DNA of 64,000 bases. Origin: Podarcis muralis (taxonomy: Eukaryota). The notes under the pieces are model-generated. The model did no database searches, had not been told where the DNA came from, and was given only the letters and a program-made list of their open reading frames with translations. How positions within the stretch are numbered: position 1 is the stretch's first letter; each line of letters starts with the position of its first letter. The stretch covers positions 99,634,001-99,698,000 of the forward strand of contig NC_135657.1 in the NCBI RefSeq assembly GCF_964188315.1, given 5' to 3'. A program made the position numbers and the translations under genes. Below, piece by piece: positions 9,444-64,000 of this stretch.

Positions 9444-9805
9444 GGGACGCGGGTGGCGCTGTGGGTAAAACCTCAGCGCCTAGGACTTGCCGATCACATG
9501 GTCGGCAGTTCGAATCCCCGCGGCGGGGTGCGCTCCCGTCGTTCGGTCCCAGTGCCTGCCAACCTAGCAGTTCGAAAGCACCTCCGGGTGCAAGTAGATA
9601 AATAGGGACCGCTTACTAGCGGGAAGGTAAACGGCGTTTCCGTGTGCTGCGCTGGCTCGCCAGATGCAGCTTGTCACACTGGCCATGTGACCCGGAAGTG
9701 TCTCCGGACAGCGCTGGCCCCTGGCCTCTTAAGTGTGATGGGCGCACAACCCCAGAGTCTGTCAAGACTAGCCCGTACGGGCAGGGGTACCTTTACCTTT
9801 ACCTT
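9444..9805 (+). mobile_element. Sauria SINE
   Basis: Runs gggacgcgggtggcgctgtggg...cctttacctttacctt; the flanking duplication taatgctct(ggg) occurs at 9435 and 9806. Confidence 0.92.
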
Positions 9806-10810
9806 TAATGCTCTGGGTAAGTGGGGGAAAGGATAAACACAGGTTAAATGCAGGCCCAGTCTTGTTTGATGACACAAGGCTGACAAATTAAGAAGGCTGA
9901 GAAGTGGGATTCTCTAGTTTTAGTCTAAAGCAAGTATATTCCATTACAGGGATTAATATAGTACTTCTCTGAAATGATCATTTGCTTTGTGAATATTCCA
10001 GTTCTCATACTGTATCATCTATTTGGCTGGAGGGTGAAAAACAAACCCAAGGAGTGGCTCAGTGACTGCTTACCCTGATATAATACTGTTGTTTTAAACA
10101 GATTAGTTCCTTGTTAAGTGCCCATGGCAACTTTGGAAAACAAATAAATGTGGGACAAAAAATATATATAACCCTTTACAATATTCTACTTCTAAGGCAA
10201 ATCTACCGATTAAAACTTTTAAAGGCATGGGAGTTTTGCATCACGATGGTAACACTTGTCCTCAGGCCCTTTTTGCAGAGAGGTGAGTGGTGGTCATGTA
10301 CCCATTGCTGAGAACAGTCCTCTGTTTTGGGGGGCTGGGGAACCTGTGGCTCTCTGTACATCAGCCACATGGGCTAGGCTTCCCTGTTCTATTCAAGGGA
10401 CTGACCAGTTCAAGCCCTTCAAATATAAAGAACCCTAAGAAAGACGAGCAGGGATCTTGGAGGTGCCCATCAGAAGCTGGCACATGGGCAATGTTTCTCA
10501 TTTGGCAGCACTCATTGATGGGGCTGTGGGATGTAAGAATCATGTGCAGTCAAACACAACATGGGTAGACATGAAGGTTCTCTCAGTCCTCCAGCCAGAA
10601 CTTCCTGCTTTCCAGGACTGAGACGAAACTTCCTATGTGCAACTTGAGATGGGTGTGGCCTCTCCTGAAGTAGAAAGAACCAGAATCACAGGCTGGTGGC
10701 AATCTTGTCTCTCTCGTCTTTATCGATGCCATCTTAACAACAGCACTACTAAGATGCACCCTTGGCTCCAGGCCAAGAGAAGAAAAAGGGGGCTTTCTCC
10801 CATAAGGAGA

Positions 10811-49407: not shown

Positions 49408-50827
49408 GAACATCTGCTATGATGATCACTACAAATACTGGCATGATTTTAACAAATCTGTGTGACTTCTCTTTTACTAGTTGGAGGATTAACAGTGTAG
49501 TCCTATTCATGTCTATTCAGCATTAGTTCCATTTGAATTCAGCGTAGCTTACTTCTGGGTAAATGTAGGTATAGGATTGGAGCCTAAATCCGTAAAATAG
49601 TATTTCCTCTTGGTTCCATAATCTCAAATGCTTTTGATTGCAAACTCATGAAAAATGTAGTAGATGAGAACTCTCTTGTGAAGATTCTGAGGCCTCCTTT
49701 AGATATTAGTCTAATGCAACCTTCCCAAACCTGGTATGAAACCTTCCAGGGGTTTTGGACTACAGCTCCCATCAGCCACAGCCAGCATGACCAGCAGTCA
49801 AAGAATGAAATTGCTAGAGCCAGCAAACATTTGATATTGTGCAAGGATTTTTTTCAGCCGGAACTCACTGGAACTGAGTTCCGCCATCTCTCTGGTGCAT
49901 TCCAGAGTTCAAGTGCTATGGAGCAGGGGATCACCATAATGGCACTGTGTAAATCCACAAAAGGAGATGATGATAATACTGTGTGATGGTACAATAAAAT
50001 GAAATAAAGCATTCTACAGCGTTTGTACTTCAGTGCCATGTACTTCAGTACTTGAGCTGTGAATAACATGTCTGTTCTGTCATGACTAGTTCCTGTTGTG
50101 CTTTGCGTAGATGTATTGGGATCTGTGTGGTCTGCTGGATTAGAGGCAAGCAAAAGATATCCTATTAACGTACTCCCTGCCAGAAAATGACCTGTTATCA
50201 TAGCCTTCTACAGCAATTAGACTGACCAGCCATAGCAGCAGTTCTTTACCAGTCCACCATGCTATCCTCAAGGAACGTTCTTCTCAGTTTCATGATTTGT
50301 CACAAATTTGTAAAAGCCAGACAACAAATATGTGATTTTCACTTGATCATCCGGATCAGGTATCTTACATAACAAATCAAGAATAATTTCTGGATTGCCT
50401 GTAGAAATCCAGTTTTGCATACCTTTAATTGTATTGATCTATTCTGCCCAACCCCCATCAAAAGGTGGGTGGGACCAACAGGGAAGCCCTGTGTATTTGA
50501 CCTTTTTCTGTATTTTGTGGCTAGCAGCTACAACCACAGACTGCAGTGGCCTCCTGCCCAGTTATACAAAGGTTTCAGTTGAATATACAGTACTAAGACC
50601 AGGAATGTTTGCCCTCAGTGCAGCTGTACAGATTTACAATAAACCGAGTTGCATCATGTTACGCAAGCGTGAGACAACCTTTCACATTGTGAATTAACTT
50701 TGAGTGACTGATTTGTTGTAGGTGAAATGTCTCACGAAAGGCAGAGTAAGTGTTTTTCTATTTGCAATAGTGAGTTTCTGCTACAGATAAGCTGTTCTCT
50801 CCTCTTGGAAGGTGGAGCTTCTGAGCT

Positions 50828-50910
50828 TTTATAACCCTGAGCCACACAAGTTCGGGGCTCTTTCTGCTTGAGAAGAACTTCCACTTGTTCAGGACTTGCA
50901 GCAGGTTAGT
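50828..50910 (+). promoter_or_regulatory. Candidate TATA box and non-coding exon 1 of GSTA-d
   Basis: TTTATAA at 50828-50834, followed about 70 nt later by CAG|GTTAGT (50905), the same donor hexamer predicted for the a and c first exons. Confidence 0.45.
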
Positions 50911-51933
50911 ATTCTAAGGTAAATGATTGCTTTGGAGAGTCATTGCTCAAGAGCAACACCCTGGACAGAGAAGTAGTGCAGGGACAATTTCCAAAGACCT
51001 CACCTCTGCCCAAAGGTTTTCTTCTTCTTACCCGCAGAGTACTAAAGGTTTGTGGGTTGGGGAGGGGGGCTACTGTAATCCTCAGAACAGAGACATTTCC
51101 CTTTGGACAGACCAAAGGCAGGAGTTCTAAAAATAAAATGGGGTTGGTCTTTGTTGCATCTCAGAGGAAAAAGAAATCTTGGGTAAGAATGGGAGAGAAA
51201 TTAGATTCATTTAAAAAATAGTAACTCACCAAATTTCATTTCCCAAAAACATAGCTATCCCTTGAAATTTGACTGCAGTTCTCCAGCCAAACAATGTGTA
51301 AAAACACATATGGTGAGGTATAATGTGCATATAAATGCATATATTATTGAAAGGAATGTAGAAAATGGGTGTGGTTATCCAGGGTTGAGGAAGGTGTAGA
51401 TGCCATCCAATTGTCTTAGGGACTCCAGTCTGGATTTGCTTAGGGTTTAATACTTAGCCTTTTCTTCTTCCTAAGATATCCCACAAGGCAATGGAGGTTT
51501 AGGGTCAGAGGCTACCTCCTCCTAGATGTGTTACCTTCCCAGATTGATGAGCCCCACCTGCCCCTCACTTCCCTCTACAGCATGTGCAGAAACCGCCTTC
51601 TTGACCCTTGGACCCACTGTTGGTCTCATCCCTCAACCTGCCCAGAGCCTGTCCTTGCGTAGAGGGGAGGTGCCTAACTCACATGGGTTTGAGACCCACC
51701 AGCTATCCTTACCTGGTTGAGCCAGCCAGTCAAAGAGGTGGTGCTTCAGATGTGATTCATCACTACAAAGTCCCATCATCCCTGGCGGCTGGCCATGCTG
51801 GAAAGCCATGTGCCTGAGGAGATGAGAGGCAGCTGATGGCAATGGCAATGGTACGAGTACGAGGGGGAAGTTACAATTTTGTGGCTCTGGGAACATGGAC
51901 CGTGGCTGTCCAAGAGGGGGTGATAGTCATAGA

Positions 51934-52075
51934 TCATGGGTAGGCAAACTAAGGCCCAGGGCCCGGATCCGGCCCAATTGCCTTCTAAATCCGGACCATG
52001 GATGGTCTGGGAATCAGCATGTTTTTACATGAGTAGAATGTGTCCTTTTATTTAAAATGGATCTCTGGGTTATTT
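51934..52075 (+). mobile_element. Left end of a truncated hAT element (Charlie-like)
   Basis: catgggtaggcaaactaaggcccagggcccggatccggccc...; no right TIR. Family assignment is from recognition. Confidence 0.65.
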
Positions 52076-52260
52076 GTGAGTGAGGTGCCTGCTTTATTTG
52101 TTAAAAAATAAACCAGAAGGCTTTAATATGAAATACTTCCTTGCTGTAAGCAATCACCAGAGCACCATTTTGAACAGTTGTCCTGGTTTCCCTATCAAAC
52201 ATGACCTCTCAATCTCTCTCTCTGTCTCTCATCATAACAGGAAAGCAAACACTTAGGAAC

Positions 52261-55200
52261 ATGGCTGGGAAACCTAAGCTTTACTACTTCAATGGAAGGG
52301 GCCGAATGGAAAGCATAAGGTGGCTGTTGGCTGCCGCAGGAGTCGAGGTTGGTTTGTCTTCAGAATTTCTCTGACAAAGCACCTTTGCCCCACCCCAAAA
52401 AAAGAATCAAGGGAACTGTTGTTTTTCCAGCATTCTTATATTTCAGACAGTTTCCAAATTTGGGTCCAGCATTATCATTTGTGAGTGAGGTGCCTGCTTC
52501 AGGCGGGGGATTTTATCTATCCTGGAAGGGGCAGCTAATTGATGAGTTATCTTCATTCATTATTATTGTACTTTTGCTGCTAAGTAGGGGAGGAGGAGAC
52601 ATGATTGTGTGGACAGGCGGAGTCACCCAAACCCTGGGCGGCCCCCGTGTGGAATAACGACTCAAGACAACGTGCTATGGGATTAAAATTGGCCATAACT
52701 TTATTATGTTTCAGATGTGGGTAGACCTTGGCTCAGGCATTGGACGTTTATCCCTCCCAGTCCCCCGCCAGGGATCTGGGGAACATCAGGGTTATCCAGT
52801 GGGGGGGGGGCTGGCTCTGGAGAACATATGTTCAAGCAGAGAGAGCCTGCCCCCATTACGCCGCCGTCGCAAGGAAAGCAATGACAACCTCCAGGCGTAC
52901 GGCCGAAGCCTCCCCTCAAACAACCCCTTTAACGGGGAACCCTGGTATCGCCGCTGCAAAGAGTAGGGGGGGGGGCATCACCGCTGAACGCCCCCCCCCC
53001 ATTTAGGGAAGATAGACTAAAGGATTCCGCCCAAGGCCTGATACTGCCAAAGTTGTGACGTTTTGATATAGGAAAGCAGAACATGCCAATGCAGGAGAAT
53101 TCCTTTCCGACCCTTCAACAGCGACCTTGACATAGTAGCACCTGCATACCTGTGAAGAAAAGGTTAACCTGCAAAAGAAGTCTTAACTGAGGGTGGGCAG
53201 AGTGGGAGAAGCTCTGGAGCCAACTGACAATTCCCATGTAAGATCTTCCCCCTACTGTGTGGGCAGGTGGTCCCTCCCCCTAACTGGCCTGATCACCTTG
53301 GCAACGCCTCCCCAGGCGGGATTGGGCAACTGGCTGAGGTAGGCAGAGACCTCCAGGTATCCCACCTGGGGAAGGCGAAGCCAAGCCTGTGCTAATGGTG
53401 CCACATAGGGTCCAGGGGGCTGCACGCGACCATGAAAAGGGTGCCCTCCCCCATTTAATGTGGGGAGCGGTCATTGTGGGATTTACTGCTTCAAGTGCTA
53501 AAATGATATGACTAGCCTGTAGTACTTGATTTGTGCATGGGAAACATTTGTTGTTTTGTCCCAGACAGAGAAGATTATTGGGTGGGCTGGCCCGGAATTC
53601 GGCTGTGAAAGGGGATTTTTCATTAAATTTTGAAAACTTGAAAGGCCCTGTGTCATTTTTGGAGCCTGAAATTATTTCATGAGACCCTTGAAATATTCTG
53701 CCTCTTTTATTTTTTAGTTTGAAGAGCAATTAATTGAGACAAAAGAATATCTAGAAAAATTAAAGCATGGTGAGTATGTTATCTGAGTATCAGTGGGACT
53801 GTCTTCTAGTACAGTAAAGCCTTATAGTCTTCATAGCAGGGGTTTTCAAAGTGGACTTGTTTCTCCAGTTCTGCATTATGCACACTTTCAGGCAGGAATA
53901 TGTGTCAATACACAGTTGTGATCTGGTTATATTGCCTTTCCCCCTCTTCTTTGAAAGAAAAGAGAGTTATTCAGATACCCACAACACATACCACTCAACT
54001 CTGCATTGTGCAGAATGGTTTGCTTGTTTTTTAGCTGGAGAACAGAAGTAGCTTAAATAACATACAAAACTAGTTTCCAATGTGTGATTGCTGTATTAAT
54101 TTAGCACATGTTCTGCAAAAGGGTTTTGAGGGAAAAGCAGAGGCAAACATGATTATCGCAAAGGCACAATGTAAAAGTAAAGTCTCAAAATCAAAGCATG
54201 GCTTGGGAGATGCTCCTGAAAATTTACTTTCCATAGTAATTACCTGGGAGGATGGACTGATTTCTCATCTTCCTTTCACAAGGTGGAGACCTGCTCTTTC
54301 AGCAAGTGCCCATGGTGGAAATGGATGGGATGAAGATGGTGCAGAGCCGAGCTATTCTCAACTACATTGCCGCCAAATACAATCTCTACGGGAAGGACGT
54401 GAAGCAGAGAGCACTGTAAAATTCCTCTGCGGTTGGTTACTAAATGCATACTTTGGTTGGCTGTACATGATATAAGATCATCTTTGGTCTGTCATATGAT
54501 CTACTGACGAGTTATGAGTCAGCATGTTTCATCTTGGGCAAGAAAGGGTCCAGTATGAGGTAATTTGACCTCCCAGTCCCAGCAAAGTTCATGTGGACTG
54601 GTTCCTTGGAAATCAATGAATTTTCATGTAATCCCAATAGGAGATTGGGAGGTCATTGTCCCTTCCCAATGTTTGGTTTGGGGGGGGGGGTTCTTGAGAA
54701 TGTATAAAATTGATTTTTGATATAAGGCTTTCCTTATAAAAGGTGTAGCTGGTGAAGATCACTATAATGTCAAGCAAATTATAGGGGCTTTTGTTGCATA
54801 GAGAGAGGCTCTTTCCAGGGAAAATGCCCTTTCTCCAACATACAGAATCATTGTACTTGTTTTTCTGCTGGGTCATCACACATTTTTGCCTGTGACATTA
54901 CTGCCCAATTCCCCCACAAGGTTTTGGCTCTGCATTATCATAATTAGTACTATTGCTGTTGCTGCTGCTACCACTACTGTTTTTCTTGTTTCAAATTTTT
55001 TTATTAAATTTTCCAAATTTTACACAACACAAAATAACAAAAAACAAAACATACAAAAAACAAAAACAAACATACATTAAAAACTTCTTACAGATAAAGA
55101 TCCAAATTACGTTCCATTATTGAGAGACTTCCTCAAATCCTTCCTAACTGATTTTCATTAAATCTCATTTTAGCAATTTTCCAATATCCACTTTCTAATA

Positions 55201-56612
55201 AAATTAACCTGTTCAAATTACTAATTTCCTTTCTTTCCATATTATTCTTAATCCATAATCTTATACAACCACTACTGTTTTTCTTATTATTATCTGAATA
55301 CGGGAGGAGGAAACACTTTCTCTTTCAAATAGGATTGATATGTATTGCGAAGGTGCTATGGATCTGAATGAATTGAAAAAGATGCTTTCCTTCAAGCCAG
55401 CTGACAGCAAGGAGAAGGAGTTTGCAAATGTTATTGAAAAAGCCACCACCAGATACTTTCCAGTCTTTGAAAAGGTATGGGGTGAAGGAAACTTACAAAC
55501 TTTTTAACACAACAAAGTCACCTATGCTCAGCTGGAGTTGGCAGCTGGTAATGTTGATAGGACTGCTTGGCTCATCAGAAATCATTTCCTTATTGCTTGT
55601 ATTTTCCAAGCTTCTGAGCTAAAAGTAAAAAAAGTAAAACAAAAAATTAGCTATGTGAGAGAAGATCAGGAATCACACACAGTGTTCGTTTACCATGTGA
55701 ACTCTGATCTCAGAATCTGCCCTGCCTCATTGAAACATGATAAGCAGTTGTTTGGGAAGAGGGAATGTAATGATCAAGCTTCTCTTTCTTAGCCAGCTGT
55801 TTGTTAGAAGACATGAATCAGAACTGATACAAGTACGCTCAATCTCCTGATACAATATAATCTGGACGCGTGATATTCAAAAGTGGTTCAGATATAGATT
55901 CTCCATTTTGTGTATGTACCTGAAGTACATTTCCTGCTCTATAGGTCCTCAAAGATCATGGACAAAATTACCTGGTAGGAAATCAGCTCAGCAGAGCAGA
56001 TATTCAATTGCTTGAAACCATTTTAATGGCAGAAGAGCTGAAGGCTGATATTCTCTCCAAATTCCCTCTTTTAAAGGTAAGCATGCTTACTGAAGCATAA
56101 GCAAAGTTCTAGTATGGCACTTTTATTCTTTGCATATCTAAAACACCATTGTCTCTGGATTTCTATTGCACAAAGTCTAAATCACACACAGGAGGCCCAC
56201 ATTCATGGATAAGCCTTCTGTGAATTAAATTTAGACACAAACAGGTAACCTACCTACGATTATAGACCTGCAATGTAGCTCGAATGTTGACCTCCCTCTC
56301 CAAAGGTGCATGCCTGAAATAATTGGGTTTAGCGTATGTACAAAGTTTGAGTACATATAAAGTTTATCACTTGTATTTTCATTATTGACTATGAAAGCAT
56401 AGTAACTGGTAAGCGGCAAATGATTATTTGGGGATGCCACCATTTCTCCTTTGCTCTACTAAAATATTTTGCTCACTCTCTCTCTCTCTTAGGCCTTTAA
56501 AGAGAGAATAAGCAACATCCCGACAGTGAAGAAATATCTGCAGCCTGGTAGTCAAAGAAGACCACCAGCAGATGAAAAGGCTATTGAAAAGGCAATGAAA
56601 ATTTTCGCCTGA
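52261..56612 (+). CDS. GSTA: Glutathione S-transferase alpha class, copy d (221 aa; GSTA1/2/3-like helix 9)
   Basis: Exons 52261-52347, 53718-53769, 54283-54415, 55333-55474, 55945-56076, 56493-56612 (666 nt), all GT-AG. Starts [21 protein letters not shown], contains LSRAD, and ends [24 protein letters not shown] at 56785-56790. Confidence 0.95.
52608..53405 (-). mobile_element. Unclassified LTR-like repeat, copy 2 (GSTA-d intron 2)
   Basis: TGTGG...CCACA termini; motif islands collinear with 35660-36370; AATAAA on the minus strand at 52705-52700. No TSD was found. Confidence 0.5.
54988..55267 (-). mobile_element. 5'-truncated L1-type insertion (GSTA-d intron 4)
   Basis: 18-bp TSD ACCACTACTGTTTTTCTT (54970-54987, 55268-55285); T-rich left edge. 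Confidence 0.82.
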
Positions 56613-56982
56613 ATCATGGCTGAGGATCACAGATGATGCACTATTGTATTCACAGGCAATGGGCGAAAACTGAAATGGGGCCACAATGGCACAGTGTAAA
56701 TCCACAAAGCTACAGTAGGAAGCAAAATAACTAACAGAACAAAAGGAAGTAGTGATAATACTGTGCTGCATTACACTAAAATGAAATAAAGCATTCTACA
56801 ACTTTTGTATTCTGGTTGTTTTAGTTCCAGTATGACGTCATTTACATTAATCTTAAACAGCAGGGGAACTCATAAGCAGCCTTGTCATACTTTTTGTTGT
56901 TGTTGTTGGAATTGGAGCTGACAACCGACAGTTTACACCTACTCTCACTCTCACACACATTTCAAAGTATAATATCCTAATA

Positions 56983-58446
56983 CAGTGGTACCTCGCAAGA
57001 CGAAATTAATTCGTTCCGTGAGTTTTTTCGTCTAGCGAATTTTTCATCTTGCGAATCACGGTTTCCCATAGGAATGCATTGAAAATCAATTAATGCGTTC
57101 CTATGGTCAAAAAAAGTCCAAACAAAGCCAAATTTGGTACAACAAGAGTTTATTAAGTGCTCTTTAAAGTCACACATACTGTAAAGAGCATTTCAAAAAT
57201 TGAAGGAACAATAAATTAAGTTTCTAAACATGACAGAAAAACATTTAAAAATCAACAAAGTGTACAGTACATTTTCTAAGACTCTGGGGGACAACTCGAA
57301 GAAGGTTCCTCTTCCACTCTTTGCTTCTTGCTGAAGAACCTGTCCATGGTCTGCTGCTTCATCCGCCTTTTCAGCACCTCCCTGAAAGGCGACATGACAT
57401 ATCAAAAGTGTTCACAAGGTCATGTGCCATGTGCTTGTCAGGGTGGTGCCGCTGTGCAAAAGCCTGCACATCCTTCCACTTCAGGGAAATGTCCCTCAGT
57501 TCTTTGGAGGACAGCCGTTCCTCAGTTGCTTCCTCCTCTTCCAGCGAGGCCTGCTCCTGCGCAGCCTCTGCCTGCAGTTCGACCAGCTCCTGGGTGGTCA
57601 GCTCGTGGTCGTGCTCCTCCACCAGCTTGCTGATGTCCTCCTCTGTGACCTCCAGGCCCATGGTCCTCCCCAAGGCAACAATGTCCTGCACCACTGTTGA
57701 CTCTGGTGCATCAGAGTCACTTGGTGCCACACAGTCCGGCCACAGGCTGCGCCAAGCGCAATTCAAATTTCTCTGGCTGATCCCGTTCCATGCCGTGGTG
57801 ATCATCTTCAAGCAGGTGACGATGTCGAAATGGTCCTTCCAGAATTCCCGCAGGGTGATGGTGGTGCAATCAGTCACCTCGAAGCATCGCCTGAAAAGCT
57901 CCCCCAGCCCCTTCCCAACTTTTGCAAACCCCTCCCCAACTGTTCCCCCAGCCCCTGCCCAACTGTTGCAAACCCCTCCCCAACTGTTCCCCCAGCCACC
58001 CAGCACACAGAAATTCAAATCCAGATTTTTTTAAAAAAAACAGCAGAGTGGCCCAATGGTCACAAAAAATCATAAAAATGCAGGAAAAAAACACACAAGC
58101 TTCCAGATTCTTGCAAACCCCTCCCCAACACCAAGTCCTTGAATTCCAAACACCCCAACCCAAAATCCAAAACCCCCCAAAAAAGTTTTAAAAGCTTAAC
58201 TTACCAAATGGCTGCAAAAGAAGTTTTGGAAAAGCTTCAAAAATCACCAAAGTCTTTAAAAACCTCAAAAAAGGCTACTATGTACACTGCGTTCTATGAG
58301 TTGCTCCTTGAAGTCAAGTCGCAACTGTATTAACGGTGTTAAGAAAAAGGAAACAAACTTGCAACACGTTTTCGTCTTGCGAAGCAAGCCCATAGGGAAA
58401 TTCGTCTTGCGAAGCAACTCAAAAACGGAAAACCCTTTCGTCTAGC
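56983..58446 (-). mobile_element. Internally deleted Tigger/pogo DNA transposon with a transposase remnant
   Basis: TA-CAGTGGTACCTCGCAAGACG left TIR. ORF 57371-58018 contains Tigger-like C-terminal text (TLREFWKDHFDIVTCLKMITTAWNGISQRNLNCAWRSLWP...ELTTQELVEL). The right subterminal repeats are present but the terminal TIR is missing. Confidence 0.88.
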
Positions 58447-58709
58447 TAACCTAGCAGTTCAAAAGCACACCAGTGCAAGTAGATAAATAGGTACCGCTAT
58501 GGCAGGGAAGTAAATGGCGTTTCCTTGCACTCTGGTTTCTGTCATGGTGTCGTGTCCCGTTGTGCCAGAAGCAGTTTAGTCATGCTGGCCACATGACCCG
58601 GAAAGCTGTCTCTGGACAAACGGCGGCTCTCTCGGCCTGAAGCAAGATGAGTGCCACACCCCATGGCCACCTTTGACTGGACTTAACCGTCCAGGGGTCC
58701 TTTACCTTT
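58447..58709 (+). mobile_element. Sauria SINE, 3' two-thirds
   Basis: taacctagcagttcaaaagcac...ggggtcctttaccttt, fused directly to the Tigger end. Confidence 0.88.
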
Positions 58710-59131
58710 AACTTTTGCTCTTCAGTAGAATCTAAAGGTGTTTCCAATAAACAAAAAGGCTTGACTTCACAGGCTCTTGGAATGAATGAAAGTAATAATC
58801 TATTCTGCCTGAGATATTTGGCTTCATGCCTCTGACACATTTTTATTTTATTTTAATATAATTATCTCTGCTTTCCTAGAGACTTTGTCCTCTGCTTTTG
58901 ATGAACCATTATAATAGATCAGGATTTCACTTTAAAGCATAGCTATATACTCCAGGGAAGCTATTTATTTCCATTATCCCAAGACTGTAGCATCCCCTCT
59001 GGACCTTCCTGGTCTCTGCTTGCTGGGCTCTAGGCATTTAAAGGTTAGCTGTGCAAGTAAGCTGTGTGTAGATCAAAATAACATCAGCTCCAGAGAGCAA
59101 TTTTCCTGCCTGGTTGAAGATAACCAACACT

Positions 59132-61050
59132 ATGGTAAGCATCCTTTCCTATTGTCTTGCTTTGACAACCACAGCTAATGAAAGGAAGGGAGGCAGGTGG
59201 CATAAATGTACAAAACGTATTCATGGTGTAGAGAAAGTGGATAGAGAGAAGCCTTTTTTTGTCCCCTTCTCCTAATACTGGAACTGACAGACAGCCAATG
59301 GAACTGACTGATGGTAGACCCAAGACAACACACAGCTCATTTATGGAACTCACTGCCACAAGATGTGGAGACATGGCCACTAGTTTATAGGATTCGGAGA
59401 CATCATCACTGGGGAATGTCTTATCATTGGCTACAAGTCGTGACAGGTATGGGGAACCTCTAAATTCAGAGGCACATGTTGTTGAATACCAGCCCCTGAA
59501 AGGAGAGGGCTGTTGCCTTCGGACTCATGATTGTGGGCTTCCCAGAGGCATCTGGCTTTGCCATTTTGGAAATAGGATACTGAGACTGAAAGGACTTTTG
59601 ATCTTATCTGGCAAGGCTCATTTTGCAATATTATGTAGTAGCAGGCTAAAAAAAGAAAGGTATAAGGGCACAAAATACTCTGTCATTCTATGTAAATGAC
59701 TACAAAAGTCAGATGATTTGCCTGTCTGTCTCTTTCTCTCCAGTACGGATTCATCAACACTTGCCTGAAGTCTCTTCTAATAGAGAAATTTGGTGAAGAA
59801 ACCTGGGAACATCTCAAGTGAGTATGTGTACCTTTCCGACATTGTACGAGTGAGATTTGAAAACTTAAAAGTCAAGCAGGGGATAATTCTTTCAGTTATG
59901 GATACACTAGAGAGAAACACGGAAAAAAGAAGATCCTTGTTGCATCTTAAAGACTAACAGATTTATTGTGGCATGAGATTGTGTGGACATTTGTCCACTT
60001 CATCAGATTCATTCAGAAAGCTGCATCTGACATGAAGCGAGCTCTAGTGTGAAATTTGTTAGGTCCACAAATATTTAGAGGGCCACAGTTAACATTTGGG
60101 AAGGATAAAAAAAACAATTCAGAATGGGTTCAGCAACATCTCTGGCAACTGCAGTGGTACATGCGCCCTATTTTTGTTTTATACAATTCATGCATGTTCG
60201 TGCATGTTTCACAGTAGGCTCCATCTTAAAAGAGGCATTCTCTCCTGTTGGAGAGAGAAGGGGAAATTCCTGTTTTTAAGAAGGTGCCTGCCAACTGTGG
60301 GTTTGTAAGCACTTGAAGAACGATTTTACTGGGTTAAAAAAACCCCAAAAATCTCTCTCTAATTCATTTTGTGTACATTTAAAATGGTTTTAAGAAAATT
60401 ATGCAAGTAACATTGCAGTCTTCCTTAAAAGTTTTGCATTGATATATTTTTAAGTAGATTGTACACATCGCACAATAAATCATGCTCTCCGTTTCGTTTT
60501 ATATTCAGATGCTGATGTTAGTTTTGATGCTTTTACAGGACAAAAACTGGGATTGAAGACACCTTTATGACATACACAGTGTATGATGATGCTGTCACAA
60601 TGAAGCTGGTCCAAGAAACCTGCAAAACACTAAGTTGTGAAACATGTTCTGGTTTCATTTATTATATTTGCATTCTTTTAATTTTGCCTTTTAAAAATTC
60701 TCTTTCTGGCTTTTAATTTACTTTGATGTTATGTTTAACTGTATTGTTTGGTTTATATTGTTTTATCTTATGGAATAAGCTTAGTTTAGGGACAAAGAAT
60801 TGTGCAACCCAATTCTGAATGTGTTTTCTGCCGCCCTGGGTTCTTTGGGGAGGAAGGGAGGGATAGAAATACAATCAATGAATAAATAAATAAAATACTG
60901 ATGGACAAGTAAAACATGCAACATGATCCAAGGAATGTTTACTCAGAAGTAAGCTGCATTATGTTCCATTGGACTTAGTCCTAGGAAAGTATGTATGGGG
61001 TACAACTTAAATTCAATTGCAAATTGCACTTGTTTCTAGGCAAATGGGCA

Positions 61051-61098
<48 letters not shown>

Positions 61099-62785
61099 TG
61101 TCGTGGAAGTAAGTCCCATTGGACTTATTTAAAGTGGGCCTGTCAGCTTCATCAGTGGAGCATGGTGCCTCTGCCTTGACTCCAGATGAAGGCCATGGGG
61201 TATCCTTCCCATTCAGGGGTGTGGAATCTGTGGCCCTCCAGAAGTTGCTTTCATCCCTGATCGTTGGGCTAGCTGGCTGGAGCTGGCTGAAGTTGCCGTC
61301 CCATTACACCTGGGGGAGGCTGCAGGTTTCCCACCCCTGCCTTAGCTAATCATCCAGTTCCCTCATCAGCTGCACTTTTTGCCCACCAAAACAGCTAAAT
61401 GGAGCTCCTACTGAAATGCAAGAACTAGCCTTGCGATTGACGTCTCTGCTGTCCCGCCCATTGCCCTGTGAGAACTGTACACATTTCTCTGAATGGAGAA
61501 ATTTTGTGAAGAAAGTCATATGATACTGGGGGCATTAACAATTGCTAGGGTGTTGCGTTGAGGGGGGGGAACAGGCAAGTCTTCTTCATGGCAAAAGGTA
61601 TACTTTCTGCTGTGCGCAGGTATGTCTCCTTCCTGTCCTCTGCCAAACGCAATATTAGTGCTATGCCATGCCACACACTCTCCTCACATCACCAAACAAG
61701 GGGTAGCTAGGTTGGCAGGAGCAGGGACCGAGCAACAGGAGCTCACTCCATCACAGGGATTCAAACCGCTGAGCTTCTGATCGGCAAGCCCTAGGCTCTA
61801 TGGTTTAACCCACAGCGCCACCCGGGTAGGGTCGACCATATGTTTCCTGGCAAGAGAAGAGATCTTTCTGAGCAGCTGAGAGGTCTCTGCATTCAGACTA
61901 GGACGTTGGCCAGGCTTGTGATCTTTTGAGAAGGTGTAATGGCTGGATTTTGCTCATGCTCAGTGCTTAAGAGCGATTATTCCAACCCTGTTATTATTTG
62001 TTCATCTCATTTATTTCCACTCAGAGCTGTCAGAAGAGGTAGTGCTCAAACTTTTTGGGGAATACTTTTTCAGTTTCTGTAAGATGTCTGGATACGACAG
62101 AATGCTACGGACCCTAGGAGGAAATTTGATGGAGTTTATCGAGAACCTTGATGCCCTTCATAGCTATCTTGCCTTGTCCTACCAGGTACCTCCTTTGCTG
62201 TGTAGACACAATTCTGAAAAGCCCTTTTAAGAAAATACAAAATAAACAATTTTAGAAAGGGGGGGGTGAATGTGTGACCTGGACCTGGCCTGCCAGTCCC
62301 TGGCAAAACTGAGGGCTTCTTTTCCCTATCACAATGCTGAGGTGAGGGGAAAAGTTTAATCTGCTCATTCTACCTGGGATGGTGTGATACAGCACTGTTC
62401 TCTACTGGGGCAGTTTGATAAGTTTAAAGTCCACCTCTCAGCTTAGTACTACGACTGGGAAACCTACAATGACAATACAAGAATTACAATACAATAATTG
62501 TTCAGTCCGGACACTGAGATCCAGCGCCAAGGGCCTTCTGGTGGTTCCCTCACTGTGAGAAGTGAGGTTACCAGGAACCAGGCAAATTACCTTCTCAGTA
62601 GTGGTGCCCAACCTGTGGAACTCCCTCCCATCAGATATCAAGGAGATAAACAACTAACTTTTAGAAGGAAGCCCTGTTTAGGGAAGTTTTTAATGTTTGA
62701 TGTTTTATTGTGTTTTTCATATTCTGTTTGGAGCCGCCCACAGTGGCTGGTGAAGCCCAGCCAGATGGGCAGGGTATAAATAATA

Positions 62786-62823
<38 letters not shown>

Positions 62824-64000
62824 AAAGCAAAACTGAATCATTTTTCATTCCTCCTCTTGGCCGCACAAGAGAAAGAGAGTAGAGGGAGAAGTATGTGATG
62901 TAACATGAAACTGTGGTTAAGCATTACGACTGAACTCCACACAGGCATTTTGACGCTGAAAAGTTGCCTGGGAAGGGAATGTGGTCCTTGTTTGGAGAAA
63001 GCCCGCTCTCCCCCCCCCCCTTAACAGAATTGTCTCAGAGGCGCTTGTCCCAAGGATGTTAGGAATGCATCTTTTAAGAATGTTGAGCATAACTATTGTG
63101 TGTAGGATTCCCCCCCAAGAAAATAAAGCAATAGTTTTTCTACTTAGGAAATGAATGCGCCATCATTCCGAGTAGAAAGAACCGATGGGATGTTGTTGCT
63201 CCACTATTACTCCGACAGAAAAGGCCTGTATCATATTGTCCCAGGTATACTACAATATCTTGTTCCTTGTCACGTTTTGCTCTGTAAACCTTTTCATAGA
63301 GGGTAGAAAATACGTTTGCACTAATGAACTACCTGTTTCCTATTTTGGGACAATTCCTCCTTCCTCTCCAGTGGTCCTTATGGCCCATCCCACATTGTTC
63401 AACAGGGTTCCCCTCCCTGAGTGCAGTCTCCATGAAGAGAATTCCACCTAAAAAGCCAGAATGCTTCAACCCTAATTGCTAGAGGAGAGGGAAGTCTGGG
63501 CATGTGTGAAGAAGGAAGTATGGAGCATTGTGTTGGTCCAGGAGCGCCTCTTGATTAATGCCAATTGTCCGAATTATGGAGGAGCCAGCCACAAGTCATG
63601 CCTGAGGTGGAGGCTGGTCCATGGCAGCAACACACTCCCAGGCCGCACCCGCTCTGCCTTTCAAGTTGGCAGACACGGGTTTGCGTGGCACAGTGGGATG
63701 CAGTGAGCTCCCCAGACCCCACTGGGGAACATTGCCAGGAATTTTGCCTCATAAATCCTGGCTTTCCCCTGCCTGAACCTGAGGAGCAACCACCATTGAC
63801 TCATGACGTGACCGGAAACACAAACGATTATTCTTTCTTACATAGGAATCCTTGAAGCTGTGTCAAGAGATTTCTTTGACAGCGAAGTGACGCTGAAGAT
63901 TCTTCATCAAGATCTAGAAGAGGAGCGCACTGGGAAGAAAGAACACGTGGTGTTTTTTCTTTCGCAGAATGAGAAAGAAGCAAAGAATGGGATCGAAGAA
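59132..64000 (+). CDS. GUCY1B2: Soluble guanylate cyclase beta-2-like subunit, N-terminal H-NOX domain (partial; continues past the window)
   Basis: Exons 59132-59134 (ATG|gtaagc, inferred), 59744-59817, 60539-60633, 62025-62185, 63148-63244, 63846->64000 join in frame: MYGFINTCLKSLLIEKFGEETWEHLKTKTGIEDTFMTYTVYDDAVTMKLVQETCKTLKLSEEVVLKLFGEYFFSFCKMSGYDRMLRTLGGNLMEFIENLDALHSYLALSYQEMNAPSFRVERTDGMLLLHYYSDRKGLYHIVPGILEAVSRDFFDSEVTLKILHQDLEEERTGKKEHVVFF. The proximal His103 and the Y-x-S-x-R heme motif are present. The sequence is beta2-type rather than beta1-type; orthologue versus paralogue status is unresolved. Confidence 0.88.
61054..61093. repeat. (TA)n microsatellite
   Basis: Read directly from the sequence. 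Confidence 0.95.
61706..61824 (-). mobile_element. Sauria SINE, 5' third only
   Basis: Reverse complement of the head region up to ccaacctagc. Confidence 0.85.
62497..62823 (+). mobile_element. L2-type LINE 3' end with a (TAG)n tail
   Basis: ccttctggtggttccctcac...gcccaacctgtggaactccctccc...gggtataaataataaa followed by (gta)n at 62788-62823. Confidence 0.7.

Follow-up and report, generated by a model that had tools for sequence, protein, structure and literature searches.

The stretch analyzed in this work comprises 64,000 nucleotides of Podarcis muralis contig NC_135657.1 and will be called the window; it contains no N. Coding exons 1 to 6 of a gene for a beta subunit of soluble guanylate cyclase occupy its last part, from 59132 to 64000 on the + strand, as recognized by sequence reading and by translation of candidate exons. 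We consider it very probable that this part corresponds to the 5' third of GUCY1B2 in lacertids, orthologous to Gucy1b2 of mouse and gucy1b2 of zebrafish, and that its present neighborhood, a cluster of GSTA genes, was produced by a rearrangement in the lacertid lineage.

Every intron of the gene model is bounded by GT-AG, the phases of consecutive exons are compatible, and no stop codon interrupts the roughly 195 codons of exons 1 to 6. The elements of the model, including two motifs related to haem binding, are the following:

59132–59134, + strand: coding part of exon 1, made of the ATG only, with the donor gt at 59135 (sequence reading and translation).
59744–59817, + strand: exon 2 (YGFINTCLKSLLIEKFGEETWEHL), found by translation and by a match to Pfam HNOB; a contig of sequencing run X17 is spliced from 59817 to 60539 (GT..AG).
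60539–60633, + strand: exon 3 (translation, Pfam HNOB and the joint in the X17 contig).
62025–62185, + strand: exon 4 (Pfam HNOB, E 1.8e-12; alignment to GUCY1B1 residues 65–112).
62159–62161, + strand: codon of the proximal haem-ligand His, within LDALHSYL of exon 4, by translation.
63148–63244, + strand: exon 5 (Pfam HNOB, E 1.6e-7); the joint 63244>63846 (GT..AG) occurs in an X17 contig and in one raw RNA read of X23.
63205–63219, + strand: Y-x-S-x-R haem-propionate motif YYSDR of exon 5, by translation.
63846–64000, + strand: exon 6, cut by the end of the window; in Podarcis lilfordi the exon continues for about 60 bases past this point.

A first coding exon reduced to its ATG matches the protein of P. 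lilfordi (P0395), which begins M-YGFIN with residue 2 encoded from exon 2. Intactness is demonstrated only for the roughly 195 codons that lie within the window, which ends inside exon 6. An earlier reading of this DNA (the original prediction) had proposed a beta2-type soluble guanylate cyclase with an open frame downstream of the GSTA cluster, endowed with the proximal His and the YxSxR motif. As far as the window reaches, the exon model, the GT-AG sites and the Pfam HNOB matches confirm the proposal, and translation confirms both motifs.

The Pfam HNOB matches of exons 2–5 follow the order of the profile. Among solved structures, the best match for exon 4 is the H-NOX domain of GUCY1B1 (PDB 6JT0 chain B, 5MNW), over residues 65–112, which include His105. 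A separate observation concerns a segment found a few residues past the YxSxR motif of exon 5, GL[C/Y]HIVPG (63214–63216 region, GLYHIVP): lacertids and zebrafish have Tyr, and most beta2-type proteins in the alignment have Cys instead.

To which cyclase gene the exons belong was examined by protein searches, alignment and phylogeny. Exons were searched singly and never joined into a spliced protein; P. lilfordi P0395 was therefore the proxy for the window gene in the tree. An exhaustive protein search with exon 4 retrieved mostly single-exon fragments of open reading frames (ORFs) from short contigs, with few full-length representatives usable, and the cluster names pointed to beta-2-type proteins. 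A search with the crocodile protein P0032 yielded a large family, henceforth clade A, whose sauropsid members are 80–87% identical to one another. The window exons are 65–73% identical to this family, and 65–67% identical to its squamate members. The window gene was at one point taken for an odd divergent copy of the P0032 family, an idea overturned when alignment revealed two groups. One of them (A) contains crocodile P0032 together with proteins of anole, fence lizard, bearded dragon, Zootoca, chicken, turtle, Xenopus, gar, sturgeon, shark and coelacanth. The other (B) contains proteins of deer and jerboa and one frog protein, and its diagnostic residues are common to the window and the mouse. 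Searches seeded with group B proteins extended clade B, among the matches listed, to sharks, ray-finned fishes (including zebrafish gucy1b2), coelacanth, lungfish and amphibians, as well as to turtles, crocodile, tuatara, many squamates and mammals, mouse Gucy1b2 included.

In per-exon tblastn the best match of the window is P. lilfordi CAI5769453.1 (P0395), with 192/199 identical residues. Elgaria follows with 85% identity; other squamates show 74–83%, tuatara 78%, and turtles, the clade B crocodile protein and zebrafish 75–77%. At each of the positions that carry clade A signature residues (EKYGEE, FLTFEVY, LKQFGEYFFEFCKRSGYDHML, LSLSYQ, SMHLHYY, IIGAAALDFFN) the window has the residues of clade B. 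Membership in the beta-1 family is contradicted by the bit scores of exon 4, which are 54–56 against human GUCY1B1 and 88–100 against beta2-type proteins.

A phylogeny, which the original prediction had recommended as a check, was built by maximum likelihood from 66 proteins, with invertebrate and Ciona beta-1 proteins as the outgroup and branch support given by the Shimodaira–Hasegawa-like approximate likelihood ratio test (SH-aLRT). Support was 99 for clade A and 80 for clade B; within the latter, tetrapods were supported at 99 and squamates at 100. Podarcis P0395 is nested among the squamates of clade B on a branch that is not unusually long, and the Gucy1b2 proteins of mouse, rat and zebrafish fall in the same clade. 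Both clades follow the species tree from cartilaginous fishes upward, and the branches of clade B are longer than those of clade A. Because the P. lilfordi protein falls in clade B with mouse Gucy1b2, and because of the identities of the window exons, the sequence comparison identifies the window gene as a true GUCY1B2 orthologue and not as a paralogue lost in mammals.

The latter option, a second beta2-type paralogue that is distinct from true GUCY1B2 and has been lost by mammals, was one of the two readings contemplated in the original prediction. A paralogue of this sort is real: it is clade A, which extends from sharks to birds and contains no mammal among the best 120 matches, and the names in use at NCBI fail to separate clades A and B. 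It is, however, a different gene. The window is 85–98% identical to squamate clade B proteins, against the 65–67% cited above; the P. lilfordi orthologue belongs to the clade of mouse Gucy1b2; the clade A gene of lacertids is a separate one located elsewhere, with P. lilfordi P0475 on chromosome record OX395130.1 and P0395 on OX395128.1; and RNASEH2B lies downstream of the cyclase in the collinear Podarcis locus. We give this reading hardly any credence, as the tree and the per-exon identities already speak against it to the point of refutation.

Evidence of transcription was sought in four sequencing runs aligned over 58600–64000, of which X23 is bulk RNA sequencing (RNA-seq) and X17 is only guessed to be RNA. 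Contigs from X17 contain the joints 59817>60539 and 63244>63846, exactly at the modelled borders between exons 2 and 3 and between exons 5 and 6. One raw X23 read also spans 63244>63846; the − strand position of its first mate is what a usual stranded library would give for + strand RNA. In one X17 contig, 77 bases of intron 1 (59667–59743) are joined directly to exon 2, which is then spliced to exon 3. Pre-mRNA or a retained intron is the more likely source of that intronic sequence. An alternative start within intron 1 was considered for the same contig and rejected, as the sole in-frame ATG meets a stop codon.

Comparison with P. lilfordi shows that the gene is under purifying selection. 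Over 573 in-frame exon bases (191 codons), 562/573 nucleotides are identical, and the 11 differences are divided into 7 synonymous and 4 non-synonymous changes. The resulting ratio of non-synonymous to synonymous rates (dN/dS) is 0.15, and a binomial test speaks against neutrality (p 0.003). Exons are 98% identical between the two species, more than introns (94–96%).

These data bear on a second alternative, namely that the locus is a decaying or recently disabled copy in which the 5' exons remain open, the exons beyond the window are disrupted, and no working cyclase is made. Near-zero expression in two bulk RNA-seq runs is compatible with this view, and so is the composition of the protein collection, which has clade A proteins but no clade B protein from the other lacertids annotated in RefSeq. 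In addition, GUCY1B2 has become a pseudogene in several primates (PMC7555810). On the other hand, the low dN/dS, the higher conservation of exons than of introns and the correct splicing at two junctions are not what a disabled copy would show. In P. lilfordi nothing is missing from the gene, which encodes all three domains and a CaaX box, and the branch of its protein is of ordinary length. Disablement is thus unlikely, and by extension from P. lilfordi the exons beyond the window would be expected to be intact.

Several observations weigh against the identification of the window gene as an intact, functional GUCY1B2, and they are gathered here. (i) The window covers about 195 codons, and the HNOBA, cyclase and CaaX parts fall beyond its end. 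(ii) Clade B as a whole is only moderately supported (SH-aLRT 80). (iii) P0395 is the sole member of its 90% cluster, and P. muralis, P. raffonei, Lacerta agilis and Zootoca, all annotated in RefSeq, contribute clade A proteins only in the cluster listings. A tentative explanation is that the RefSeq annotations may have left out the clade B gene of lacertids or marked it as defective. (iv) Depth over the gene is near zero in two bulk RNA runs, which indicates very low expression there. (v) The runs that yielded spliced contigs are classed as RNA by guess only, and they also contain intronic sequence. (vi) The junction between exon 1 and exon 2 was unseen in RNA in the four runs over 58600–64000. 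(vii) The dN/dS estimate is based on just 11 differences. With these points taken into account, we still hold identification as a GUCY1B2 orthologue to be very probable.

The gene order around GUCY1B2 was compared with that of other reptiles. We take the human order at 13q14 to be RNASEH2B, GUCY1B2, C13orf42 and FAM124A. GUCY1B2 is flanked upstream by a C13orf42 homologue and downstream by RNASEH2B in Elgaria, Hemicordylus, Phrynocephalus and Pantherophis; in Crocodylus, C13orf42 is also upstream, and the flank covered has no gene called on the downstream side. The upstream homologue is on the same strand as GUCY1B2 in all five non-lacertid species, and tblastn with jerboa C13orf42 detects it with E values from 1e-23 to 1e-34. 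The same query found no C13orf42-like sequence in the window or in the P. lilfordi locus (L006). At that locus GUCY1B2 is 15.5 kb long; the end of a GST gene precedes it by about 4 kb on the same strand, and a convergent RNASEH2B follows it closely. A convergent RNASEH2B 3' of GUCY1B2 is present at the P. lilfordi, Elgaria, Hemicordylus, Phrynocephalus and Pantherophis loci, the window itself ending in exon 6.

Since the five non-lacertid species compared keep C13orf42 upstream and RNASEH2B has been retained downstream in P. lilfordi, the simplest reading is that the GSTA adjacency marks a lacertid-lineage breakpoint on the 5' side of the gene, between C13orf42 and GUCY1B2. A single rearrangement on the way to lacertids would have put a TMEM14A-GSTA block 5' of GUCY1B2 and kept RNASEH2B 3' of it. 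The original prediction was right in stating that the neighborhood is unlike that of human, as GSTA genes are found upstream in place of C13orf42/FAM124A. Its other reading, a translocated GUCY1B2, is the correct one of the two: the gene is a true GUCY1B2, but it has not wholly left its old neighborhood, as RNASEH2B is still convergent downstream in P. lilfordi and only the 5' side has been exchanged, from C13orf42 to the GSTA cluster. An RNASEH2B neighbor of this kind is what the suggested check near RNASEH2B/FAM124A would look for. Nor is the GSTA-adjacent position the general one in sauropsids, since C13orf42 is still the upstream gene in the four non-lacertid squamates and in Crocodylus.

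The arrangement of the original locus is also reflected in database entries. Proteins that are C13orf42-GUCY1B2 fusions or carry a C13orf42 name include one of 910 amino acids in Eleutherodactylus, one of 886 amino acids in Crocodylus and a jerboa cluster (L005; P0288, P0313, P0157). Such fusions and misnaming arise because both genes lie head to tail on one strand. A literature search found no paper on reptile GUCY1B2 synteny, on clades A and B, or on C13orf42 together with GUCY1B2.

The junction itself can be narrowed down with the following landmarks:

About 56493–56612, + strand: last coding exon of the GSTA-d gene, by tblastn with the last-exon peptides of GSTA-b and GSTA-c of the same window.
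56785–56790, + strand: poly(A) signal AATAAA of GSTA-d, by pattern scan and sequence reading, 2347 bases 5' of the cyclase ATG.
56988–58444, no strand assigned: repeat-rich intergenic stretch, unaligned with P. lilfordi except for dispersed repeats (blastn against L006).
58995–59131, + strand: conserved 5' flank of GUCY1B2; positions 9560–9865 of the Elgaria locus (L004) align with window 58995–59327 at 67% identity (dc-megablast).

The distance of about 2.3 kb originally given between the GSTA-d poly(A) signal and the cyclase start agrees with the 2347 bases counted. The rearrangement junction is confined to the repeat-rich DNA from the AATAAA at 56785–56790 to about 58995. The conserved flank at 58995–59131 is probably the 5' untranslated region or the core promoter of GUCY1B2; it is CpG-poor, with an observed/expected ratio of 0.0–0.15.

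Location of the junction in DNA of this kind raises a third alternative, namely that GSTA and GUCY1B2 were wrongly joined during assembly across the repeat-rich region from 56.8 to 59.0 kb. Dispersed repeats fill the intergenic stretch, the sole part left unaligned with P. lilfordi, and the read alignment was confined to 58600–64000, so that 56.8–58.6 kb lie outside it. Against a misjoin, the independent P. lilfordi assembly GCA_947686815.1 shows the same order and orientation, with the end of the GST gene about 4 kb before GUCY1B2 and no N there. The window and the P. lilfordi locus are collinear, at 94% identity over 50821–56987 and at 95–96% over 58445–64000; the breaks correspond to differing repeat insertions, and neither sequence contains gaps. 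The junction is therefore present in two independent assemblies. A misjoin is very unlikely, and we conclude that the adjacency is not a misassembly.

Upstream of the cyclase and within its intron 3, the window contains the following elements:

Near 2.0 kb: TMEM14-like exon (Pfam Tmemb_14).
12.8–18.5 kb, − strand: GSTA copy 1.
29.8–37.4 kb, + strand: GSTA copy 2.
42.6–49.4 kb, + strand: GSTA copy 3.
52.3–56.8 kb, + strand: GSTA copy 4 (GSTA-d).
61677–61857, − strand (within intron 3 of the cyclase gene): copy of a tRNA-like dispersed short interspersed nuclear element (SINE), with read depth thousands-fold above that of adjacent bins in all four runs and no role in coding.

The four GSTA copies are of the alpha class of GSTs, and a Pfam GST_C match supports identification of the cluster. 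ARAGORN found no tRNA gene in the SINE at 61677–61857. Summed read depth is very high in each of the four runs over the dispersed repeats at 61677–61857, 58600–58780 and 62401–62762. A repeat of about 350 bases has at least 8 further copies in the window, and in P. lilfordi it is found at different intron sites. In the spacer between GSTA-d and GUCY1B2, two long ORFs on opposite strands overlap at 57321–58034 (237 amino acids on the + strand, 215 on the − strand). A Pfam search with the 215-amino acid ORF of the minus strand gave no match, and the pair, which lies in the stretch unaligned with P. lilfordi, is probably a decayed transposon. At the opposite end of the window, an ORF of 194 amino acids (50–634) resembles by eye the end of a copia-type retrotransposon polyprotein; it has no Pfam match at E 0.01.

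If the product works as its relatives do, a mechanism can be sketched. Structures of GUCY1B1 and knowledge of rodent beta-2 suggest by analogy that the iron of the H-NOX haem would be held by the His of LDALHSYL, and the haem propionates by the Tyr, Ser and Arg of YYSDR. The gas acting at the haem might be nitric oxide, or the protein might respond to falling oxygen as reported for the mouse. Binding of the ligand would alter the H-NOX domain, and the change would be relayed through the HNOBA/PAS region and a coiled coil to a class III cyclase domain, which would make cyclic GMP. The P. lilfordi protein P0395 has the corresponding domains, namely HNOB, HNOBA (E 1.2e-48) and Guanylate_cyc (E 1.1e-70), and ends in the CaaX box CVLF; it is 81% identical to the Elgaria protein with no large gaps. 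A C-terminal CaaX box like that of the P. lilfordi orthologue suggests prenylation and membrane tethering of the window product as well. Mouse Gucy1b2 has been linked to low-oxygen sensing. Orthologues in mouse and zebrafish are expressed in small subsets of olfactory neurons (PMC4480006). The suggestion of an undercharacterised gas-sensing cyclase is not supported for the window gene, as it is the orthologue of a gene already studied in mouse and zebrafish and represents no new class of gas sensor.

A by-product of the analysis, and its most interesting observation, is the split between clades A and B, with apparent reciprocal losses and inconsistent naming. No mammal was found in clade A, either in the 66-protein tree or among the best 120 clade A matches, and no bird appears among the best 120 clade B matches, though turtles and crocodile rank high there. 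At NCBI the name "beta-2" is applied to clade A in anole, chicken, green turtle, bearded dragon and Xenopus, and to clade B in zebrafish and mammals. At the clade A loci of Anolis and alligator, the gene downstream is unnamed and has no Pfam match. An attractive speculation, which we regard as possible but somewhat doubtful when taken as a whole, is that the name "GUCY1B2 / beta-2" spans two ancient genes, both of which were present at the outset of jawed vertebrates. Mammals would have kept only B and birds apparently only A, while reptiles, amphibians and many fishes would have kept both. Avian and anole "GUCY1B2" would then be non-orthologous to mouse Gucy1b2, clade A might represent an uncharacterised, slowly evolving candidate gas sensor, and the move of GUCY1B2 next to the GSTA cluster might have changed its regulation in lacertids.

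The consequences of the finding are small, since the window harbors the expected lizard orthologue of a known cyclase. Its value lies in part in correction: "GUCY1B2" annotations in reptiles and birds need assignment to clade A or B before use. Besides, the breakpoint between C13orf42 and GUCY1B2 in lacertids provides a clean synteny marker for the lineage. If, speculatively, the GSTA neighborhood had altered expression, lacertids might be viewed as a natural experiment on Gucy1b2 regulation. Breaks of this type in gene order have been common as squamate genomes evolved.

Comparison with known systems places the gene as follows. The window gene belongs to the same orthology clade as Gucy1b2 of mouse and rat (P0423, P0358) and gucy1b2 of zebrafish (P0339). 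With them it shares the H-NOX residues KLFGEYFF.FCKMSGYDRML, LALSYQ, MLLHYYSDR and EAV..DFFD, as well as the proximal His and the YxSxR motif, and its H-NOX part is 72–76% identical to that of mammals. A convergent RNASEH2B downstream and a C-terminal CaaX box, seen in the lacertid orthologue of P. lilfordi, are further points in common. In contrast with that system, the window gene has a GSTA cluster upstream in place of C13orf42/FAM124A.

The closest relative is the sister-species orthologue in P. lilfordi, CAI5769453.1 (annotated as 'guanylate cyclase soluble subunit beta-2-like', L006), with codons 98% identical, flanking DNA 94–96% identical and the same GST-GUCY1B2 order. It differs from the window gene in four amino acids over 191 codons and in the SINEs inserted within introns and between the two genes, and it is complete, whereas the window holds exons 1–6. 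Clade A proteins (Zootoca XP_060130208.1, P0180; P. lilfordi CAI5775576.1, P0475; Anolis P0178; chicken P0174) have the same domain order (HNOB, HNOBA, Guanylate_cyc), the His, the YxSxR motif and a C-terminal CaaX box. They form, however, a separate clade that predates the split between sharks and bony vertebrates, are 65–67% identical to the window and include no mammal among the best 120 matches. GUCY1B1 (PDB 6JT0 chain B, 5MNW) belongs to a common H-NOX fold family, with exon 4 aligning at residues 65–112, but it is more distant from the window (54–56 bits for exon 4, compared with about 100 for beta2-type proteins). Beta-1 lacks a CaaX box and acts as a heterodimer with alpha subunits. 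Altogether, the cyclase of the window is a member of a known gene family, annotated in many reptiles including the sister species, in which a lineage-specific change of neighbor has taken place.

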